NCBI RefSeq assembly: GCF_000150275.1
Contig: NW_002060946.1
Span: forward strand, 3,243,454-3,307,453
Direction of reading: 5' to 3'
DNA from: Trichoplax adhaerens
Taxonomy: Eukaryota > Animalia > Placozoa
Length of the DNA: 64,000 nucleotides
Shown: in pieces, positions 16,627 to 56,800 of the stretch
How positions within the stretch are numbered: position 1 is the stretch's first letter
How the letters are laid out: each line of letters opens with the position of its first letter
Notes under the pieces: generated by a model
Database searches by the model: none
What the model was told of the DNA's origin: nothing
What the model saw: the letters and a program-made list of their open reading frames with translations, nothing else
Made by a program: the position numbers and the translations under genes

Positions 16627-18263
16627 AAAGTGAAAGAGAATTAGGTAAAATGTCTCACGTGATATAGGACTTGAAATTTCATCCTAGTATATATTACTAC
16701 ATTCGTAAGAATAGAAAATAATTTTAAATTCTACATGATAAATCACTACTTACTTAAATACTACGAGATGCTACTTATTACGAATAGCATATTGTACTAG
16801 ATCTGTCACTGCTTATTTAGTATTATTATTACTTCTTTCTATAGGAAATTTGTATCAGTAAAAGAAATAGCAAGTCGAAAAGCCGAAACTTTTCAATGAA
16901 TTTCTGAATGATATTCTATTTGACAAATACAGTATATTTTAACTATTGAGATATACACGTAATAGCTAGCTTTCTTGATACCTTGTCAAGCAGTGAGACA
17001 TTTACCATTTTTACTTTAACTAAAAATTACAATTTTCGATAGTTACTTGTATGAATGATTGATTTGGCTGCTAATTGATTTCAAACTTTATTTTATGTGA
17101 TGATATCCTGTTTAGAGTTTAAGTCTTGTCCTGCAATGAAATTTGCATGATCGTGCTTGTTGCGATGAAAATTGGTTTCAATTTTGCATAATCATTTCAT
17201 TTGTAGTTGTAATGAACTTTGAGTAGCGATTAATATTGACTTAAAATCAATGCTGATTTATAAATTATTAACCATGATCTTAAATTTTACTTGAATCATT
17301 GGATAATTCAGCTTCTACTTCTAACGTTGGCATTGCCTTGCCTTTTTCAGCTGTATTTAAAACTATTGTTTCTGCTTGTTTTTGTATTTTTGATGACAGA
17401 TAGGCGTAAAGAAGTGTTCTATCAACTTTAGTATTACTATAAATTTTAGATTATAGTAGTAATGATATCTTCGATTCTGACTGCAGTAGATGTCAAGATA
17501 ATTTTAATTGTTGATTAATAAAATGTCCGCTTTCTACTAACGACTAATTGTGAACGAGATTGTTAGAAGGTTGACTGTTGTATCAATGCTAACATGCGAT
17601 AGGCGAGAGTTTCGATAGGGCTTTGAAATCATTTTATGATATAATTTCTATATTACCAAATCCAAATTGTAAAGTAAGTAATAATGCTAATTTTATTTGT
17701 AGTCCTATATTTACATTGCATGCTGTAGCGATAGTGTTGATGCTACACTTGCTACAGTTAGGATAGGCTAAATGACATTTATCGTTAACTTACATATTAT
17801 ACCCGTACGTTCACTGTAGATAGTTAAGCCCGAAATTGTATCGTATAATATAAGTAAATATTTCGCTTTAATCTAAAAGCTATGCAAGAAGAATAGTAAA
17901 GTTGAATTTGTTGCTATCGGTAGATATTTTTCAAAAATGAAAAAGTGCAATACATTTTATATTCAACTCTATTGTAGTGGTTTACATTGTAATTCTTCAT
18001 GATATCACACATTTTTTTGTACATTAAGAATAGATAACTACTCCGTAGCTAATTTTGAAGAGGAAATAACCTTCTTCGTCAAAGACTAAGAGGGTAAATA
18101 TTAAGAAAGAGCTTAATGTATCATAAAGAGGGCCACAATTAGAAAAAGACAACAAGTTAGTGCAGTTGGTGGCAAATGCTGTCGCCAACACCAGATGGTA
18201 TCAAAGTATAGCCTCTTAATTTAATGTTCGTCATGTGTCTTGTGGAAAGTGCTCATCTTCGCG

Positions 18264-21200
18264 CTACCAGAGATCGTCCGATTTGTTAAATATTTTGCTA
18301 TATGCCAATATAGTCAAGTAGACGATTACGGAGCCACCAAGTATTAATCCCATAGCACCAGGTTGAATCTATTCAATTAAATTGACAGTGATGTTGATAT
18401 GCGCATTCAATGATTGTAGTTAGAACTGAATTTGTGTTATTCCGTGAATTGCTGTATTAAGATGGAATCACGATACGGTAACAATTACTTACAATCTTAG
18501 TGTGAGCCAAAAGCATAGGAAATGCTGTAGGATGATGGTAAGAATGGAAAGATGCATTAGTGGTAGCAAATTTCCTCAAGTATTTGTATTGTGATGACGG
18601 TTTAGTTCATAATAAGAGTTGAAAGTAAAAATATTATTAGCCAGTACTTACCAAAACCTGAAGTGACAAATACCGCGGTGCAGTATATTGCTATATCCTT
18701 ACCAACACTATCGAAAGGAATAAGAGTACCGCAGCAGTTAAATGATGTTATTACCAGGTAAAATTGCTCTAGACACATTTGATATCATTTCTCATTTATT
18801 CAGGTTTATTGTTGATGAGAAGTAATGCTCTACCATATGGTCTACCGTCATAATTGCTGTGATATCGTACAATGTCACTATAACTCGAGAAAGTTGGAGC
18901 AAGTTCAAGTTTATTGTATGCATAGACTTTGCCTAGTAACAGTCCGCTAATTCAACTATACTCTGCAAAGTGAAAGATATCAAGATGTACTCTTGCCTGG
19001 TGCAGTATATCCATCAGTGTCAATAGTAGTATGAATATCACATACGCATACAGTAATATGGTTACGTTATAGTTAGTATCGTCTGCTGTACAATCTATAT
19101 TCATCTCTATTTTTACTACACTACGACCATAAACAATTATGAAATACTGTATGTCCAATTTTATCACCCAAATGGCAAGATTTTTTATACACATCGATCG
19201 ATGGTACGCGTAGAAAGATTAATTTCTTGGTAAAGTAAATTACTGTTAGTAAGTGATTAAGTTAATGGACATCTTTTTGAAAAGAATCGGTAACTAGAAA
19301 GTAAAGGCGTCGATAGTATCAAAGTATCGTCATGGACATTGATTACATGATCGTACCCGCTCTCCGTGCCAAAATCCCCTTGAAGTCGATTAGCAATCAT
19401 GATGGGTATCGGTGCCAAGACATAAAAGATAACTGTGGTTGAAAAGAATCATTAATTCTATCTCTGTATCTAATTAATTCTATATTAATGTATGTAGTAT
19501 ACTCAATACGCTGATATAAGAATATCATAGCAATGTAGCCATTCCATAAGTCCTTTCCTACCGCTTTTGACATTCACTTACCGATAAACATAGGCCACCA
19601 ACAACTAAAAAATATTGAAGAAAAAGAGAATGAATGACGATGTTATAACTTTGTAATAAATTTTTTATTAGCATAACAATTATTTAGCGATCGTTGTTCT
19701 AGGCAATCAAGCCATTTCTCAATCATCCTACGATCATTAAGCAATCAATCGATCGTATTCTCTTCATTTTACAATCAATCAATTGAATCTTTGACTAGTC
19801 AAAATTATCGGTACTTACTCATATTCAGGTAATGCACATCCGAGGACATCCAAGAGGATACCACAAGCGAATGAAAACGTAATTGCGACAAGGCTAGAGT
19901 AGGGAAGAAAAAATAAGGGAATGAATTTAGCAAAACGGATGTAGAAGCCACAGTATTTCAAAGTCATTATAAGTCACTGTTTGTCTATGATTGTATAGAG
20001 AGGATCAATACATCCTTTCCAACGTAAACTAAAGTCGAGATATCACTACAGAAGGGTAGTCCGGTTTTAATGTTAAATTTATTATCGATTGCATTGCTAA
20101 TCGATAATGTTTTGGATGGGCCATTTTGTCCATTACGTCATCGTGCTACTTTTACTGGTACTGGTAGTACCAGTCATGGTAACGCGGTTTGACTTCTGAT
20201 GCGGCATTTCCATACACAACATTAGACTAGGACATTGCTCTTGATTGACTATGCATCACGCAATCGCGTTCAAGACGTCACAATCGAAGTTAAAGAAAAG
20301 GATTTGTAGGCTTTAGGATTGACAGTGGAGACGATCGAATGGCGATCAAATTGTAAGGCATACAAGCAAAAGAACAGATGATTTGAACTGATCAAGGGCA
20401 GAATAGGAATAGAGTCTAGTTTCGGACTGTAGATACTGTCTTGGATGGTATCAATGAAGTCTGCTCGAGCCGATTTGTAATGGTGTATTGACAGTGAAGA
20501 TGGCTAAATGACGGCCGAGTTTCAATGCATACAGCCCAGTACAAGCAAAAGAATGGATGTTTTGAAAGTGATCAAGGATAGTAGTAAATAGGAATAAAGT
20601 GTCGGTAAGGACGCCATGTACCATCTTTGATGGCATCCATGGACTTGACTACAACTGATTGAAATGGCCATGATTATAATGAACAACTTACGCTGGTGTC
20701 GCAATTCAATCAAAAGGATGCAACAAGAGGACAAGAACCCGATAGGATCGACGTCCAGTAGGAATGGATACCCAATACATCGTCGCAGTATTATCCCATA
20801 GCGATCATATTAGAATGGGGATAGAATGAAGAGAAATTGAATTAGTATGATGTATACCGTGTAAGAAGAGAATTGGATTTGAACAAAATTCACCTGGCGT
20901 CGTAATTCAATCCAAAGGATGCAACAAGAGGACAAGAACCCGATAGGATCGACGTCCAGTAGGAATGGATACCCAATACATTGTCGCAGTATTATCCCAT
21001 AGCGATCATATTAGAATGGGGATAGAATGAAGAGAAATTGAATTAGTATGATGTATACCGTGTAAGAAGAGAATTGGATTTGAACAAAATTCACCTGGCG
21101 TCGTAATTCAATCCAAAGGATGCAACAAGAGGACAAGAACCCGATAGGATCGACGTCCAGAAGGAATGGATACCCAATAAATCGTCGCAGTATTATCCCA

Positions 21201-21311
21201 TAGCGATCATATTGGAATGGCGATAGAGTCAAGAGAAATTGAATTAGTATGATGAGTACCGTGTAAGAAGAGAATTGGATTCCAACAAAATTCACCTTTA
21301 ATTCCTGCCAT
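18264..21311 (-). CDS. LEPROT: Leptin receptor gene-related protein / Vps55 family (LEPROT/LEPROTL1)
   Basis: Exons 21311-21296, 20692 (1 nt), 19893-19819, 19604-19582, 19432-19357, 18707-18652, ~18525-18491, ~18369-18264. They give MAGIKALVAITFSFACGILLDVLGCALPEYDCWWPMFIVIFYVLAPIPIMIANRLQGDFGTESGVGKDIAIYCTAVFVTSGFAFPMLLAHTKIIQPGAMGLILGGSVIVYLTILAYSKIFNKSDDLW*, collinear with the LEPROT/LEPROTL1 four-TM family. Confidence 0.93.
20693..21295 (-). repeat. Three tandem 201-bp units, each a complete GT...AG intron
   Basis: Units 21295-21095, 21094-20894 and 20893-20693. On the minus strand each begins GTGAATTTTGTT and ends ...CCAG; the units differ by a few substitutions. Confidence 0.92.
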
Positions 21312-21685
21312 ACTGTAGAGGTTGTTGTTGTTGTGGAAGAATGATGATGATCGATCGACGAGATGCTGAAGGTTAACGGTCTAGTCGAGGGGTGCCGGGG
21401 CTGCTCATAAATGACACTTGATTGTGGTGCTGTCCGTCCGCTCGTCCACGCAAGCCTGTGCTGTACTGCGCAGTGTACAGCAGCAGTGCTGAATTCAAGC
21501 TACTGTACCGGACCGAACCGAACCGTTCTGATCTGGACTGTCCTGCTCGTTTGTTTACCAACTAGAGAGAAAATTTTTTTTCCAGGTACAAGTCTGCTAT
21601 TGTTCTGGTCCAGGGCGACATGGGTTTTGCGCAGAGAAAGTTGTTGAGACATTTTGGGGAGTGAATTATACAGGTGTAGTACAGC

Positions 21686-22130
21686 AGAGTGACTACATGA
21701 AGTTAGGTACCCTTAAGAGATGATTGGCAAAAGCCAATGGAAATGAATTTTTCAAGTGTCTTGTTGATTCCTAGTCATGGCTGGGGCATTTTTTCACGAA
21801 ATGATGACATAGTGTACCCCAGGTATAGTATAGTATCGTAGAGTGACTACGTGAAGTGAGGTACCCTTGAGAGATTTGTACTCTTAAGCAAATGGAAATA
21901 AATTTTTCAAGTATCTTGTTGATTCCTAGTCATGGCTGGGGCATTTTTTCACTAAATGATGACATAGTGTACCCCAGGTATAGTATAGTATCGTAGAGTG
22001 ACTACGTGAAGTGAGGCACCCTTGAGAGATCATTGGGATAAGCAAATGGAAATGAATTTTTCAAGTGTCTTTCCACACATCCTGTAATGTTCGCTAGTGG
22101 CTTAGTGACAGTGGTGACCCTTGAGAGATC
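21686..22130. repeat. Tandem repeat, ~154 bp unit, ~2.6 copies
   Basis: 'agagtgactac.tgaagt.aggtaccctt.agaga...aatggaaat.aatttttcaagt' starts at ~21686, ~21840 and ~21994. Confidence 0.85.
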
Positions 22131-22831
22131 ATGTTTTGCAATCATTTTACGAGTGGAATCTCTACTTGCTCTCCGCTTCAGGGAACATTCTCATTTTTGA
22201 GTCAGCCCATTTTCTCCTCCATTTTATACCGTTGTATGACGTTTTACAAGTGCTACTGTATAGTATACAGTGTCGTACACAGAGGCAAGCTAGCAGGTGA
22301 CATTATTTGTAGGCAAAGAGCCCCTCTCTTGTGCTGGTTCCATTGCACAACAAACCATGTTAAAATACATGCCTGTAGAGTGTGTGTGTGTACTTATGCT
22401 ATATGCATGAATAGATGTTGTTTTATCGCAATTGATTTTATAAATTCAAGTTTTATCCTTCAATTGGCCTTCTTCCGTTGCATGGAAATGAAGAAATGGA
22501 ATCCATTTTGCAAGATTGGAACATCATTTCCAAGGCCTAGCTACTAGTCTACTTTGGCACAAGAACAAGATTTTGATGGACACCTCCAATGTCTGTCCGT
22601 CCAAAAGAAAGATGGTACAGGCACTGTATCAAGACAGGAAGATGGCCGATATTGGACCCTCTTTACCCCATTTTCCCATGGGTATTGTATGCTGTTGAAA
22701 GTGTGGAAAGGGACAGTCTTCTACCAAATACTGCTTTGCAATTGTTTTTCTTTGTAATTAATCATTCATTCTCATCTGCTGACGTCATGACCCCGAGTCA
22801 GCCATAACAACCGACCCTCGTCATCAGCCCA

Positions 22832-22950
22832 CCACACAGTCACACACACACACAGTCAGACACACACACGGTCACACACACACACAGTCACACACACACA
22901 CAGTCACACACACACACAGTCACACACACACACAGTCACACACACACAGT
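22832..22950. repeat. Compound CA microsatellite (cagtcacacacacaca)n
   Basis: Directly visible; a short (GA)n run also lies at ~23220-23238. Confidence 0.95.
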
Positions 22951-23319
22951 GGTAGCGGCCAACAACAAGGACGCCATTAAACCCTTTGCAAATCCTCCAT
23001 TAGCGCTTTCCAGTTGGCATCGTTTGCATGAGAAAAACTGCAAGAACTTTTCTTCTTGACTGCATTGATGCATAGAAAAAGAACAAATTGAAACGGATTG
23101 ATCGCTTAAAATACTGATTGAATTGTTAATTGTAGGCGTAATTGAATTAAATTGATCATCACCCATCTCAGTGGTTGCTTGTTGGTGATCCAATTCAAAA
23201 GAATTCTTGCATCGTGTTGGAGAGAGAGAGAGAGAGAAAGAGGGGAAAAAATACCCCCCAAATTATCCATTAAATTACTACCAAACAAGCGAACTATCCA
23301 TTGATTATCGCCATTAACA

Positions 23320-26300
23320 ATGGCTGATTCTTCTTCTCCTATGGCATCGACACAAACCCAAGTCAAAGTGGTCGACCCTTCCAAGAAAATTTGGTGCTCA
23401 AGTCGTGATACTATCGCTGCCTCTGAGCGCGGCGTTGTAACCAGACGCAATAAGAAAGTGGAGAGACCCAGTAATCATATTATTGAAGAAGTAATTGAAC
23501 CTTTGCATTTACTTGGAGCCTTTGTTGGCTACCATTCGCCCAAGTATAAGACATTAGCCAGTATTTGCCTTTTCCTTTTCTACCTCAACTTGATCATTTC
23601 GTCCACTTTTATCGTCTATTTTACGGCCATCAATCTCTACCTCATCGTCTATTGCATCGTCGCTGTCATGTATACCCTTAGCGCTGGTTTATGTGCTTAC
23701 TATGTCAACACTAGAACGCTGCCCTATATCGAAAAATCCATCAAAGCGCTCTATCGTGATAAATTATATATCGATAGTTTAGAATCGGTTCGAGAATTAA
23801 ATAAGGTAAGTCTAGTCATGATGGGATACAATCCATTCAATTCTTGTTGTTTTTCTGCACTTTCTCAACTGCTTGTCTTGTCCAACAATTCATCCTGCCT
23901 CCGCCGTCTTGACAATATCCGACATGCAGCAACAAGTTTCGTCCACAGTTGGACACTCTCTTCATTCTTCAAAATTCATTTTTTTCCATCCCCTTTTTCC
24001 TTCAACAAAGTCCTTTTCTATCTTTAACCTTCAACAACATCCTTCCTACCCAATGAAGAGGTAAAATGGAGTCAATCAGTCGGGTATAAGTTTATTAAAG
24101 ATCCAAATTCTCCTGATCATGACGATACTTGTCGATAACAACGTCATCACGTACAATCGTCTAACCATTTTTCCCCAATACCTTTCCTTCGCTACGTTCA
24201 AGAAGGTAAATGGGACAAGAAAACTCTTTAACGCCATGAAAATAGCCATGAGATGAGAATCAATAGTAATCAGTCCATTGGATAATGATAAAATTCGCAA
24301 GAAATGCAATATTGTCATGATGGAATCGATCATAAACAACGTTGTTTATTTTTCTTTCTGCCATCATTCATAATCTATCTTTTTTTTTTTTTTCCCATCA
24401 ATGCCATCATAAATTTTTCTCCATCGCTGACTTGCAAGATGGAAAAGATAACCTAAATGATGAAGGCGCTAGTAGATACAAGCAATGTTGTATGAAATGC
24501 ATGTTAATGCATTTTTCCGATCTGATTTAAACTTTCATGCCTTGACAGCGCGATCAGATCATTTTTGTTGACAACATTGAAATTTTGCTTTACATTATTG
24601 TGAATGCGCTCGTACCATTTTTCTCCTTTCCCAATCTTACATTAAGGTCATGCTTGCCTTTTCCATAAATTAGACAAATGAAATGATGATCAACGCTACT
24701 CTACTACTGTCCATCATTGACTAGGAAATAACATTAATAAATCCTTATCAATGCTTGGCGATCCTTACTGCACGCGTGGCCATTTTTGAACTCTTCTCTC
24801 CATCACAGTTCACAGTTTCAAGGAGAGAGAAAAAAAATACTCCATTGTTGACCGTTAACCAGTTTTGGGGGCCAAGGATAACATTACTGTTAAACCTAAC
24901 AAATCCAATCCCAATAATCAATGTGCCTGTCCAGTAAAAAGCTAATAGGCTGTCTTGTACAAATGAGAGAAATTTCCATATTTTGGCCATAATCAGACAT
25001 GGCTTCTATCCCACATCCCTCATTATTCATAATCAAATTGGCCAGTAATCCAATGGAAAATCCCTCCCATTTCTTATGCGGTTCAATTCATTAATTATGA
25101 CAGAGAAAAACATTGGAAAAGGATGAAGAATCGCTTTGATGCATGTCTGTATGTTGCACCACTTTGTCAAGCAATTTCTGAATCATTTCCATCAACCAGC
25201 TATTAAGGAAAGAAAACGCACTCATGACTGCATTGATAGAGGGTGTTGAAAACTATTCTATTCAACTGTCAAATTGACAATCCTGGTTGTAGTCGAACAA
25301 ACTTTTGCCTTGATTCACTTTAAGGTGCTAAAATCAAAAATCTCCTACACAATTTTCTATTAATAACTGGATGTCATCAATGATTGATGATCTATTGAAA
25401 CAAGAATAAAAATGGATTTAATCCGGTCTTATTCTGGCCGTATTCAATAACATTTCTACGTGATGGACTATTGATGCTGTTACAGCTAAATCAAAGTCTT
25501 TTTAAAAGAATTTTTATTTCTCTTTTCTCCCCTTGACGCTAATCTAATTTTATTTATTTTTTTCCCCCTTTTTTGCTGTCTTTCCTTCCATTGCTAAGGG
25601 TTCATTTTAGGCAATGGTAGACATCAACATTGAATTAATTTTACCACAACAGTGATCGATGATCCAATGCTATTGAAAATGGCATATTACCGTCGGCTGA
25701 AAACTAGACATCACAGCTGTCATCATGTAATTTCAATAATGATAGAGTAGATGATAAATTTAAACCTCCACTAGATTCCTTTTTCAATTCTACAGTACTT
25801 TAAGCTACCGATGGAGTTCTACCCCATCCTGTTTATTTATTGGTATCAAGGGTAATTATCCCGGGTTAATGAAACCTTTTAGACTTGCTTACACAACACC
25901 AGCTGGCTGGCCCCAAGTTGATAATACCCATTTCATGCAATTTAATGAATATATCGATACGATGAGCCATCTTGCTTAAGTTCATATTGAATTGGATATT
26001 GAAATCGATAGTATACTTTACTGTACTAGCCATCGACATCGTTAAATCCAATATTAAGTTTAGATTCATTCTGTGCGTTTATTGGACCACTTGATAGCAA
26101 GTTTAAAATTGGATTACAACAACAAGATACACGTTATCAATGCGCTAGTGAAAATTGGCTTTCACTAGCCAATTTTAATACGTGGATGATTTCAATCATG
26201 GAAGTAAAAAACTTCCACCTTTCCATCGTAGCGATATCTCCATGATTTCTACCCATGTTGAAATGTTAATCCATAATCTCTGCCTTTTTTCACCATAGTG

Positions 26301-51709: not shown

Positions 51710-53055
51710 ACTCACATCGTATTTTCAAAATTCTTGAATATCCAATACTAGATCACTTTCCATAAAATATACTTCAGTTGGAACAGTAAATTAGACTATG
51801 TGCGACCAGAGATTTGGATTAATTTAATCACTCATATGGTATTTTTTAAATTTTTGAATATCGAAATGTATTTTAGTTACTCAATTCAAATTAGACCAAC
51901 TAGGAAATTGGATTATTTGAATCACTCATATGGTATTTTCTAAATTTTTGAATATCAAAATACGTTTTAGTTACGAAAGTCAAATCAACTAGGGACTTGG
52001 ATTATCATAATCACTCACATGGTATTTTCTAAATTTTTGAATATCAAAATACGTTTTAGTTACTAAAGTCAAATCAACTAGGGACTTGGATTATCATAAT
52101 CACTCACATGGTATTTTCTAAATTTTTGAATATCAAAATACTTTTTAGTGACTAAACTCACATCAATTAGGGACTTGGATTATCATAATCACTCACATGG
52201 TATTTTCTAAATTTTTCAATATCAAAATACGTTTTAGTGACTAAACTCACATCAATTAGGGACTTGAATTATCTTAATCACTCACATGGTATTTTCTAAA
52301 TTTTTCAATATCGAAATAGGTTTTAGTTACTAAACTCAAATCAACTAGGCACTTGGATTATTTTAATCACTCACATGGTACTTTTCTTTACCGTGTTTTC
52401 AAAATTTTTGAATATCAAAATATGTTTTAGTTACTCAATCCAAATTAGACTATATCCAAATAGGGACTTGGATTACTTTAATCACTCACATAGTATTTTC
52501 AGAATTTTTGAATATCGAAATATGTTTCAGTTACTAAATTTAAATTAGAGTATGTCCAACTAGGGACTTGGATTATTTTGGTCACTCACATCATATTTTT
52601 AAAATTTTTGAATATTAAAATATGTTTTAGTCACCAAATTAAAATTAGACTACGCGTATGTCCGACTTGGGACTTGGATCATTTTGGTCACTCACATTGT
52701 ATTTTCGAAATTTTTGAATATCTAATACTAGATCACTTTCCATAAAATATCTTTCAGTTACTCAATTAACATTAGACTATGTCCAACCAGGGACTTGGAT
52801 TATTATTTTAATTCACTCACATCATATTTTCAAAATTTTTGAATATCTAATGCGTACTAGATCACTTTCCACAAAATATGTTTTAGTTACTAAATTAAAA
52901 TTAGACTGTTTTCAACCAGGGACTTGGATTATTATTTTAACTACTCATATAGTATTTTCAAAATTTTTGAATATCTAATGCGTACTAGATCACTTTTCAC
53001 AAAATATATTTCAGTTACTAAATTAAAATGCGACTACGTTCAACCAGGGACTTGT
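51710..53055. repeat. Intergenic minisatellite, ~89 bp core unit (up to ~130 bp at the right end), ~13-14 copies
   Basis: 'gggacttggattat...aatcactcacatggtattttctaaatttttgaatatc.aaata.gttttagttac' recurs at ~51992, 52081, 52170, 52259, 52348, 52463, 52563, 52670, 52790, 52919, 53047. Confidence 0.92.
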
Positions 53056-55564: not shown

Positions 55565-56800
55565 TCCGTGACCCTGATGTAATAGGCTCAGCATTAGGTT
55601 AACATATCCTCCCTCTTTTAATGAAGCCATTCCTAGTAATATTTCAGAACAATTATCATGATTAGAGGTTTCCTAGAGAAGAGTACAATGATAGGCGAGG
55701 GCTATGGTAGTGCATAATGGCACAGCAGTAAAATTGTTCTAGATCCTAATGTAATAGGCTCAGCATGACTTCTCTGCGATGCTATCGTGTGAAGGGCTGA
55801 ATAACTTCGAGCTTGATTAGCTGCAATAGACGTTATTAATAGAGTAAAACTAGAAACTACTAAAAGAAAATACATGCTTCCTTTCGCTAGGTAGTTAATA
55901 CTGTACATTCTCCCTCTTTTCATGAAGTCATCACTAGTAATATTTCAGAACGATTATCATGATTAGAGGTCCTAAAGAAGAGCGCAATGATGGGCGAGGG
56001 CTATAGCACAGCAGTAAATTGTTCTAGACCCTGATATAATAGGCCCAGCATGACTTCGCTGCGATGCTATCGTGTGAAGGGCTGAATAACTTCAAGCTTG
56101 ATTAGCTGCAATAGACATTCATAGAGTAAAACCAGAAACTACTAACAGAAAATACATGCTTCCTTTCATTAGGTAGTTAATACATTCTCCCTCTTTTAAT
56201 GAAATCATTCCTAGCAACATATAGACATTAATAGAATAAAGCTAGAAACTACTAAAAGAAAATACATGCTTCCTTTCATTAGGTAGTTAATACGTTCTCC
56301 CTCTTTTAATGAAATCATTCCTAGTAACATATAGACATTAATAGAATAAAACTAGAAACTACTAAAAGAAAATGCATGCTTCCTTTCATTAGGTAGTTAA
56401 TACATTCTCCCTCTTTTAATGAAATCATTCCTAGTAACATATCAGAACGATTATCATGATTAGAGGTCCTAGAGAAGAGTACAATGATGGGCGAGGGCTA
56501 TGGTAGTGCATAATGGCACAGCAGTATAATTGTTCTAGATCCTAATGTAATAGGCTCAGCATGACTTCTCTGCGATGCTATCGTGTGAAGGGCTGAATAA
56601 CTTCAAGCTTGATTAACTGCAATAGACGTTATTAATAGAGTAAAACTAGAAACCACTAAAAGAAAGTGCATGCTTCCTTTCGCTAGGTAGTTAATACTGT
56701 ACATTCTCCCTCTTTTCACGAAGTCATTCCTAGTAATATTTCAGAACGATTATCATGATTAGAGGTCCTAAAGAAGAGCGCAATGATGGGCCAGGGCTAA
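55565..56800. repeat. Compound tandem repeat (~300 bp units with ~110 bp sub-unit duplications) upstream of the glycosyltransferase
   Basis: Blocks such as 'ctccctcttttaatgaa..cattcctagtaa', 'gattatcatgattagaggt', 'gcgatgctatcgtgtgaagggctgaataacttc' and 'ctagaaactactaaaagaaaatacatgcttcctttc' each recur 3-7 times. Confidence 0.9.

Follow-up and report, generated by a model that had tools for sequence, protein, structure and literature searches.

How is an intron removed when it is built from three complete introns, and how could such an arrangement have arisen? These questions are raised by a locus in the placozoan Trichoplax adhaerens, within a 64,000-nucleotide (nt) stretch of contig NW_002060946.1 (positions 3,243,454 to 3,307,453; hereafter the window, to whose numbering all positions refer). 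On the minus strand, positions 20693-21295 hold three head-to-tail copies of a 201-nt unit, 603 nt in total, and our analysis confirmed that the array exists. It makes up the whole first intron of a LEPROT/Vps55-like gene and is followed by an exon of a single nucleotide. Taken as a whole, the explanation to which we give somewhat better than an even chance is that the array originated by DNA-level tandem duplication at AG microhomology and operates as one intron with latent internal splice sites.

Three introns in exact phase and an exon of one nucleotide

Tandem Repeats Finder reported a single array at this place (20693-21297, period 201, 3.0 copies, 96% matches, zero indels). The array reaches 21297 because the terminal AG of exon 1 (21296-21297) equals the AG that ends each unit, and the letters themselves define the phase of the duplication no more closely than this 2-nt AG microhomology. 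The units align without gaps and vary at 14 columns. Unit 1 carries private substitutions at columns 13, 14, 40, 41, 66, 68, 75, 82, 116 and 135, unit 2 at column 113, and unit 3 at columns 182, 192 and 197 near its 3' end (window positions 20712, 20702 and 20697). Units 1 and 2 differ from each other at 11 positions, units 2 and 3 at 4. All three start with GTGAAT and end with CCAG, and both internal junctions (21095/21094 and 20894/20893) read CGCCAG/GTGAAT, where a slash between letters marks a splice boundary; these are the only occurrences of AGGT (n = 2) in the 1,402 nt that are removed between exons 1 and 2. A preliminary description of this DNA had proposed that the repeat boundaries coincide with splice sites, that both internal junctions read CCAG/GTGAAT and that removal of one unit recreates AAAG/GTGAAT. 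The sequence agrees: the array comprises three complete GT...AG introns in exact phase, and the regenerated donor is identical to that of exon 1. The outer donor and acceptor are supported by the RNA contigs described below. Within the array the observed/expected ratio of CpG is 1.1, and a 94-amino-acid open reading frame spanning units 1 and 2 returned no match when used as a search query.

Evidence beyond the reference assembly came from assembled contigs of four public sequencing runs, which demonstrate the presence of a form but drop rare forms. Three of these runs (X14, X17 and X19) contain RNA, as shown by spliced joints, while X1 is a DNA-type run from 2025; X14 and X19 derive from two studies and carry two organism labels. 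Could the array be an assembly artefact, in which haplotypes of one true unit were stacked in tandem? The reference is a draft assembly of older date, in 1,414 contigs, and alleles do differ at the locus: an X17 contig that contains exon 1 and one unit shows four differences from unit 1, and an X14 contig carries a 1-nt insertion after 21117 (21117/21118; C on the gene strand), near the unit end, which amounts to a 202-nt unit variant and means that unit length is not fixed among strains. Against this stand independent contigs across unit junctions. A 162-nt X1 contig (20983-21144) crosses a junction and stops at column 112, as expected if unit-2 and unit-3 variants, which part at column 113, both follow the junction. 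A 231-nt X19 contig (20894-21124, 201 + 30) contains exactly one unit 2 together with the end of the preceding unit, with zero differences, and a tandem unit in a 31-mer graph characteristically yields a contig of period plus 30. These contigs and the private substitutions jointly rule out a simple assembly stutter, as the preliminary description had argued from the substitutions, and we regard stacked haplotypes as extremely improbable.

The single-nucleotide exon emerged from the RNA joints. Contigs from both X14 and X19 join 21296 to 19893 on the minus strand, skipping 1,402 nt with GT..AG ends, and at the joint between exons 1 and 2 they contain exactly one extra letter (G on the plus strand, C in the gene). 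An AG-N-GT arrangement occurs only once within the skipped 1,402 nt, as CCAG/C/GTAAGT, which places the C at 20692. Together with this unique arrangement, the joints support both outer splice sites of the array as well as the 1-nt exon and the acceptor at 19894, and no joint lacking the C is listed among the contigs. The mature mRNA thus uses the donor at 21295, the acceptor at 20693, the C at 20692, the GTAAGT donor at 20691 and the acceptor at 19894. Contigs of X14 and X19 also show the C joined between a unit end and exon 2.

The reading frame of the protein family requires this base. We ran the Pfam Vps55 profile (PF04133) against each exon of the gene separately. In the frame that requires the C, exon 2 matches profile positions 1-23 (E 0.0017); in the alternative frame, with no extra base supplied, it has no Vps55 match. 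Exon 4 matches further along the profile (positions 32-50, E 0.018), and exon 7 (positions 90-120) is the sole exon to reach the cut-off, with 24.7 bits against 24.6. Two further proposals of the preliminary description are borne out here, namely that the last acceptor alone delivers the C, which the mRNA contigs carry and for which the AG/C/GT at 20692 is unique, and that a message without it is frameshifted. The C has canonical flanks, is present in mature RNA and is required by a conserved frame, and is a single-nucleotide exon in the full sense.

Nuclear single-nucleotide exons have been described in Arabidopsis (PMC4674806) and in the Fusarium gene CYP621A (PMC12940212), and the literature that we searched contains them in plants and fungi only. 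The resemblance is close: one templated, frame-required base lies between canonical introns, and sequential removal of these introns has been proposed. The Trichoplax case differs in that it concerns an animal nuclear gene and that the upstream intron is triplicated. A published placozoan single-base exon is mitochondrial (cox1) and is flanked by organellar introns (PMC5436844). The present locus therefore offers a nuclear animal single-nucleotide exon confirmed by RNA, of a kind that gene predictors will miss.

Removal of the array

The contigs also inform on the order in which the two introns around the C are removed. Besides the mature joint, X14 and X19 each contain a contig in which a unit-1/2-type end directly precedes the C and exon 2 (placed at 21095; 20894 fits equally well). 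Measured against the reference sequence, such a junction would require that an internal donor be spliced to the last acceptor. However, a 60-nt X19 contig (20662-20721) that spans the C with intron 2 unspliced shows three differences from the reference, and the number of unit-3-private substitutions within its 29 unit nucleotides is also three. Although the positions of the differences are unlisted, their count suggests that the last unit of the X19 strain has a unit-1/2-type end and lacks the three unit-3 changes, in which case the second junction requires no internal donor. The simplest reading is that this junction stems from transcripts in which intron 2 has been removed and array sequence remains. 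The unit-3 substitutions at 20697, 20702 and 20712 may be specific to the reference haplotype.

Transcripts that retain the array in whole or in part are also seen from its other end, in unspliced contigs running from exon 1 into unit 1 (X14 21118-21325 with zero differences; X17 21095-21311). A further X17 contig covers exons 4, 3 and 2 and then unspliced intron 2, ending at 20696. Since array-retaining transcripts without intron 2 exist, the introns flanking the 1-nt exon are removed sequentially, often with the downstream one first. Sequential removal beginning with the second intron has been proposed for the 1-nt exon of Arabidopsis and for a 9-nt exon of potato invertase (PMC4674806). The word depths of the two forms (294 for the mature form against 103-109 for the array-retained form in X14, 11 against 7 in X19) demonstrate that both exist and are not quantities. 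Contigs from the RNA runs are lacking over 20740-20876, which is not evidence, since filtering and placements that fit twice can hide records.

We propose that the array acts as one weak 603-nt intron upstream of the 1-nt exon. The downstream intron would often go first, so that CCAG/C becomes an ordinary acceptor directly before exon 2, and the array would be removed afterwards. The internal CCAG/GTGAAT junctions would serve as latent splice sites: any pairing of a unit donor with the acceptor of the same or a later unit would give either the final product or an intron that is still complete, and the sole unrecoverable error would be skipping of the C. Since each unit is an intron complete in itself, duplication that is intron-precise should be harmless to splicing and able to persist.

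The weakness of the intron is apparent in its signals. Of the gene's seven introns, five begin with GTAAGT; GTGAAT is one of the two other donors and the weakest of the gene. The unit acceptor has no pyrimidine tract adjoining its AG, and no yTnAy was found in the last 60 nt of the unit. Could the amplification then be functional, with a weak intron in triplicate acting as a detained-intron or dosage device through slow 5' splicing and nonsense-mediated decay, or as host for a small RNA? The unspliced exon 1-unit 1 contigs and the unit end-C-exon 2 junctions that occur beside the mature junction in X14 and X19 would fit such a device, as would the in-frame stop that follows 34 codons into a retained unit. 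Contig depth, however, cannot quantify retention, and the units diverge freely, as their variable columns attest. An Rfam search over 18000-22200 gave no match to the unit, the only hit being a chance match to a viral leader at 19731-19767; the unit contains neither box C/D nor convincing H/ACA motifs, and its fold is not significant (z-score -0.99). A structured or small-RNA-hosting unit was rejected on the Rfam, box C/D and fold results, and a functional amplification as a whole appears very unlikely to us.

Alternatively, stepwise, ratchet-like recursive splicing might be the main route. Here each GTGAAT would pair with the nearest CCAG by intron definition, and each step would recreate AAAG/GTGAAT, or CCAG/C on the 3' side, until the C is reached. 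The internal junctions invite this idea: AGGT occurs nowhere else in the intron, both junctions copy working sites exactly, and the regenerated donor is identical to the original. The ends of two contigs, at 20696 (X17) and 20701 (X14), would also fit a unit-1/2-type end joined to the C with reference-like flanks. Nevertheless, the joints predicted by this route, in which exon 1 is connected to a unit-2- or unit-3-type start with 201 or 402 nt skipped, were not among the contigs of the four runs, even though unspliced exon 1-unit 1 contigs were; such contigs show presence only, and a check of the kind suggested by the preliminary description gave no support to the recursive use that it had envisaged, without refuting it. 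In addition, the one junction that looked diagnostic is explained by strain variation through the X19 contig 20662-20721. We consider stepwise splicing unlikely as the main route, and obligatory removal of one unit at a time is not required.

Among the closest known systems are the ratchet points, or zero-nucleotide exons, of long Drosophila introns (Duff et al. 2015, bioRxiv 10.1101/006163; PMC6110457; PMC8605326). In both, an acceptor and a donor are juxtaposed as AG/GT inside an intron, and joining of the upstream exon would regenerate a working 5' splice site. The Drosophila host introns, however, extend over tens of kilobases, and reports of recursion there are confined to the longest ~3% of introns (PMC6110457), whereas the Trichoplax intron measures 603 nt and lacks this long-intron setting. 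Drosophila ratchet points are conserved stand-alone motifs with GTAAGT, while the junctions described here are exact copies of the intron's own ends with GTGAAT, and no intermediate was seen among the contigs of the four runs, in which rare forms are dropped. Whichever route prevails, an array whose three donors are identical and whose three acceptors are nearly so, placed directly before a one-base exon, is a rare natural substrate for the study of splice-site pairing. Nearest-neighbour, first-to-last and any-order pairing can be addressed with it, and the array allows one to ask whether recursive splicing works at a 200-nt scale.

Origin of the array

We propose that a single 201-nt intron was ancestral to the 603-nt first intron. 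A tandem duplication at the DNA level, with breakpoints at the 2-nt AG before the donor (AAAG/GT) and at the acceptor (CCAG/), would have given two units, and in-register unequal crossing-over would have added the third; crossing-over could add or remove units thereafter. The splice consensus itself places an AG before the donor and at the acceptor and hence supplies microhomology at both ends of an intron. Judging by the units alone, intron-precise duplication would be neutral for splicing, and it could be a first step towards recursive sites.

Tandem duplication is common in this DNA. The 64-kb window contains six long-period arrays with periods of 89-201 nt (the present one and five of 89-155), and 200 kb sampled at even intervals from the same contig contain six with a period of 60 or more. 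The gene has its own history of such events: intron 2 holds an older, diverged tandem duplication of ~180 nt (20250-20620, 70-89% identity in pieces), so that the locus has been duplicated repeatedly. Upstream, 390 nt from exon 1, a tandem repeat of 155 nt x 2.5 with 88% matches occupies the intergenic or promoter region (21686-22071). That repeat is flanked by the LEPROT-like gene and a divergent gene starting at 23320, and X1 and X14 each contain two variant 146-nt contigs at 22019-22100.

Two possible connections between the array and intron 2 were examined and rejected. An extension of the array into intron 2 was dismissed after the best alignments of the unit with intron 2 fell within the range of shuffled controls, and the resemblance of the start of intron 2 to the start of the unit was matched or beaten by 165 of the 1,113 GTRA sites in the window.

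How often would an array be intron-precise by chance? We combined a density of 3e-5 arrays per base (from the 200-kb sample and the window), three equivalent starting positions and a probability of ~1 in 250 that the period equals the intron length. The published Trichoplax genome reportedly contains ~9e4 introns, half of which we took to be in the right size range. The resulting estimate is ~0.02 intron-precise arrays per genome, rising several-fold, to up to ~0.1, if duplications favour microhomology. This expectation is low but not negligible across a whole-genome scan plus many other genomes, and it leaves some probability for a splice-linked origin.

One such origin is RNA-mediated. The excised intron could have been reverse-spliced into its own exon 1/intron AG/GT boundary, in the transcript or in R-loop DNA, and the product fixed by reverse transcription and recombination. 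Copies made in this manner are intron-precise by construction, the ends of the array lie within 2 nt of RNA-verified splice sites, and the chance estimate is low; reverse-splicing models have also been discussed as the source of seamlessly duplicated introns in fungi and algae (PMC8469720). On the other hand, the process is not known to have been shown directly, and tandem duplication is demonstrably active at this locus. Other sites would be expected to have been hit, yet a search of the 105.6-Mb, 1,414-contig genome, of the type that the preliminary description had recommended, found no further copy of the unit beyond the three in tandem. All six remaining introns of the gene are intact, which argues that no spliced cDNA recombined in, and the unit is without a significant fold or terminal inverted repeat. 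An RNA-mediated origin thus seems improbable. We hold equally doubtful the fuller version, in which the splicing machinery reinserted the 201-nt intron at its own AG/GT boundary and the array is processed unit by unit through zero-length exons; if it were true, the array would be a living example of how recursive splice sites are born. Of the two origins that the preliminary description had entertained, DNA-level duplication at AG microhomology explains the array at least as well as reverse splicing.

A mobile intron was rejected, since the unit is found at this locus only. Introners and introner-like elements (PMC4457414, PMC3609843) likewise are near-identical introns with their own splice sites, but they occur as tens to thousands of dispersed copies, in contrast to three tandem copies whose unit has neither inverted or terminal repeats nor a stable fold. 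In their head-to-tail arrangement, decaying identity and proximity to similar arrays, the units correspond to a long-period tandem array of the minisatellite type.

Several observations weigh against the combined explanation that we prefer. That joints between exon 1 and unit 2 or 3 are absent is judged from assembled contigs, and these drop rare forms. The X17 and X14 contigs that end at 20696 and 20701 suggest that the C is preceded by more than one sequence within single runs, which could reflect heterozygosity or the use of internal donors. Chance predicts only the ~0.02 to ~0.1 intron-precise arrays per genome estimated above; a microhomology of 2 nt is weak, and chance within this one genome does not fully account for the exactness of the array. 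Finally, only the differences between the units indicate in what order and when the duplications took place.

Other gene-structural processes share elements with this origin. One model of intron gain is tandem duplication of AGGT-containing segments (PMC3265369, PMC4974935, PMC2891723), which likewise involves a tandem duplication of DNA, an AG/GT junction and copied splice signals that function. Under that model exon sequence turns into an intron at a new position, whereas here a whole intron was copied, neither a new intron position nor a coding change results, and the exon 1-C-exon 2 product is unchanged. Microhomology at exon-intron junctions is reported to promote exact intron loss (PMC3698931), with short consensus homology at both boundaries and breakpoints exactly at splice sites; that process is a deletion, and the Trichoplax array would be the reciprocal duplication, which appears to be undescribed in that work. 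The spliceosomal twin introns (stwintrons) and abutting donors of fungi (PMC7138796, PMC5587772) are also complex intervening sequences removed by consecutive standard splicing, and duplicated splice elements have been proposed as their source. In stwintrons, however, the internal intron splits a signal of the outer one and the order is obligatory, while the units described here are complete, nothing is split and no order is imposed. The locus is an unusual variant of known systems that combines a tandem array, latent recursive sites and a 1-nt exon. Should intron-precise arrays prove to exceed chance, they would be evidence for splice-site-guided duplication, the counterpart of microhomology-mediated intron loss.

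Gene map and other features of the window

The LEPROT/Vps55-like gene has eight exons, counting the single-base exon, and seven introns (Table 1). RNA joints confirm the introns 19818-19605, 19581-19433, 19356-18708, 18651-18525 and 18492-18369 downstream of exon 2, all with GT..AG ends.

Table 1. Map of the LEPROT/Vps55-like gene in transcript order, in window positions, with the evidence for each feature.
Feature	Position	Strand	Evidence
Exon 1 coding part, ATG...AAAG, 16 nt, ends in phase 1; 5' untranslated region (UTR) further upstream	21296..21311	-	RNA joint at 21296, X14 and X19
Unit 1, GTGAAT...CGCCAG, 10 private substitutions	21095..21295	-	alignment; unspliced exon 1-unit 1 contigs X14, X17
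Unit 2, GTGAAT...CGCCAG, 1 private substitution; first base after CCAG/GT junction	20894..21094	-	alignment; X19 contig 20894-21124
Unit 3, GTGAAT...CACCAG; acceptor delivers 1-nt exon	20693..20893	-	alignment; X1 contig 20713-20811
Single-nucleotide exon C, flanks CCAG/ and /GTAAGT	20692	-	unique AG-N-GT; extra C in X14, X19; Vps55 frame
Intron 2, 798 nt, GTAAGT...CTCTAG	19894..20691	-	RNA joints
Exon 2, 75 nt	19819..19893	-	joints at 19893, 19819; Vps55 1-23
Exon 3, 23-nt microexon	19582..19604	-	joints 19604/19819 and 19432/19582, X14 and X17
Exon 4	19357..19432	-	RNA joints; Vps55 32-50
Exon 5	18652..18707	-	joints 18707/19357 and 18524/18652
Exon 6, 32 nt	18493..18524	-	joints in X17
Exon 7 coding part including stop codon; 3' UTR to at least 18185	18264..18368	-	joint at 18368; X17 contig from 18185

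Besides the single base, the gene contains other small exons confirmed by RNA, of 23 nt (19582-19604) and 32 nt (18493-18524). An ATG within intron 2 is in frame with exon 2 (19815-19967, minus strand). The X17 contig in which introns 3 and 4 are spliced and intron 2 is retained could encode another N-terminus or be unprocessed RNA.

The interval 20001-24000, which covers the 5' region that the two divergent genes share, has a G+C content of 0.41, compared with ~0.32-0.33 elsewhere, and includes at 22833-22948 a CA-rich, microsatellite-like array of 16 nt x 7.2 (CACACAGTCACACACA). Further along the window, 51814-53054 and 56111-56442 hold an array complex with periods of 89, 100 and 128 nt and a clean array of 110 nt x 3.0 (95% matches), the latter not bounded by GT...AG. 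A diverged array of 81 nt x 4.1 is located at L005:1584-1941 (G000:C1411:1106583-1106940).

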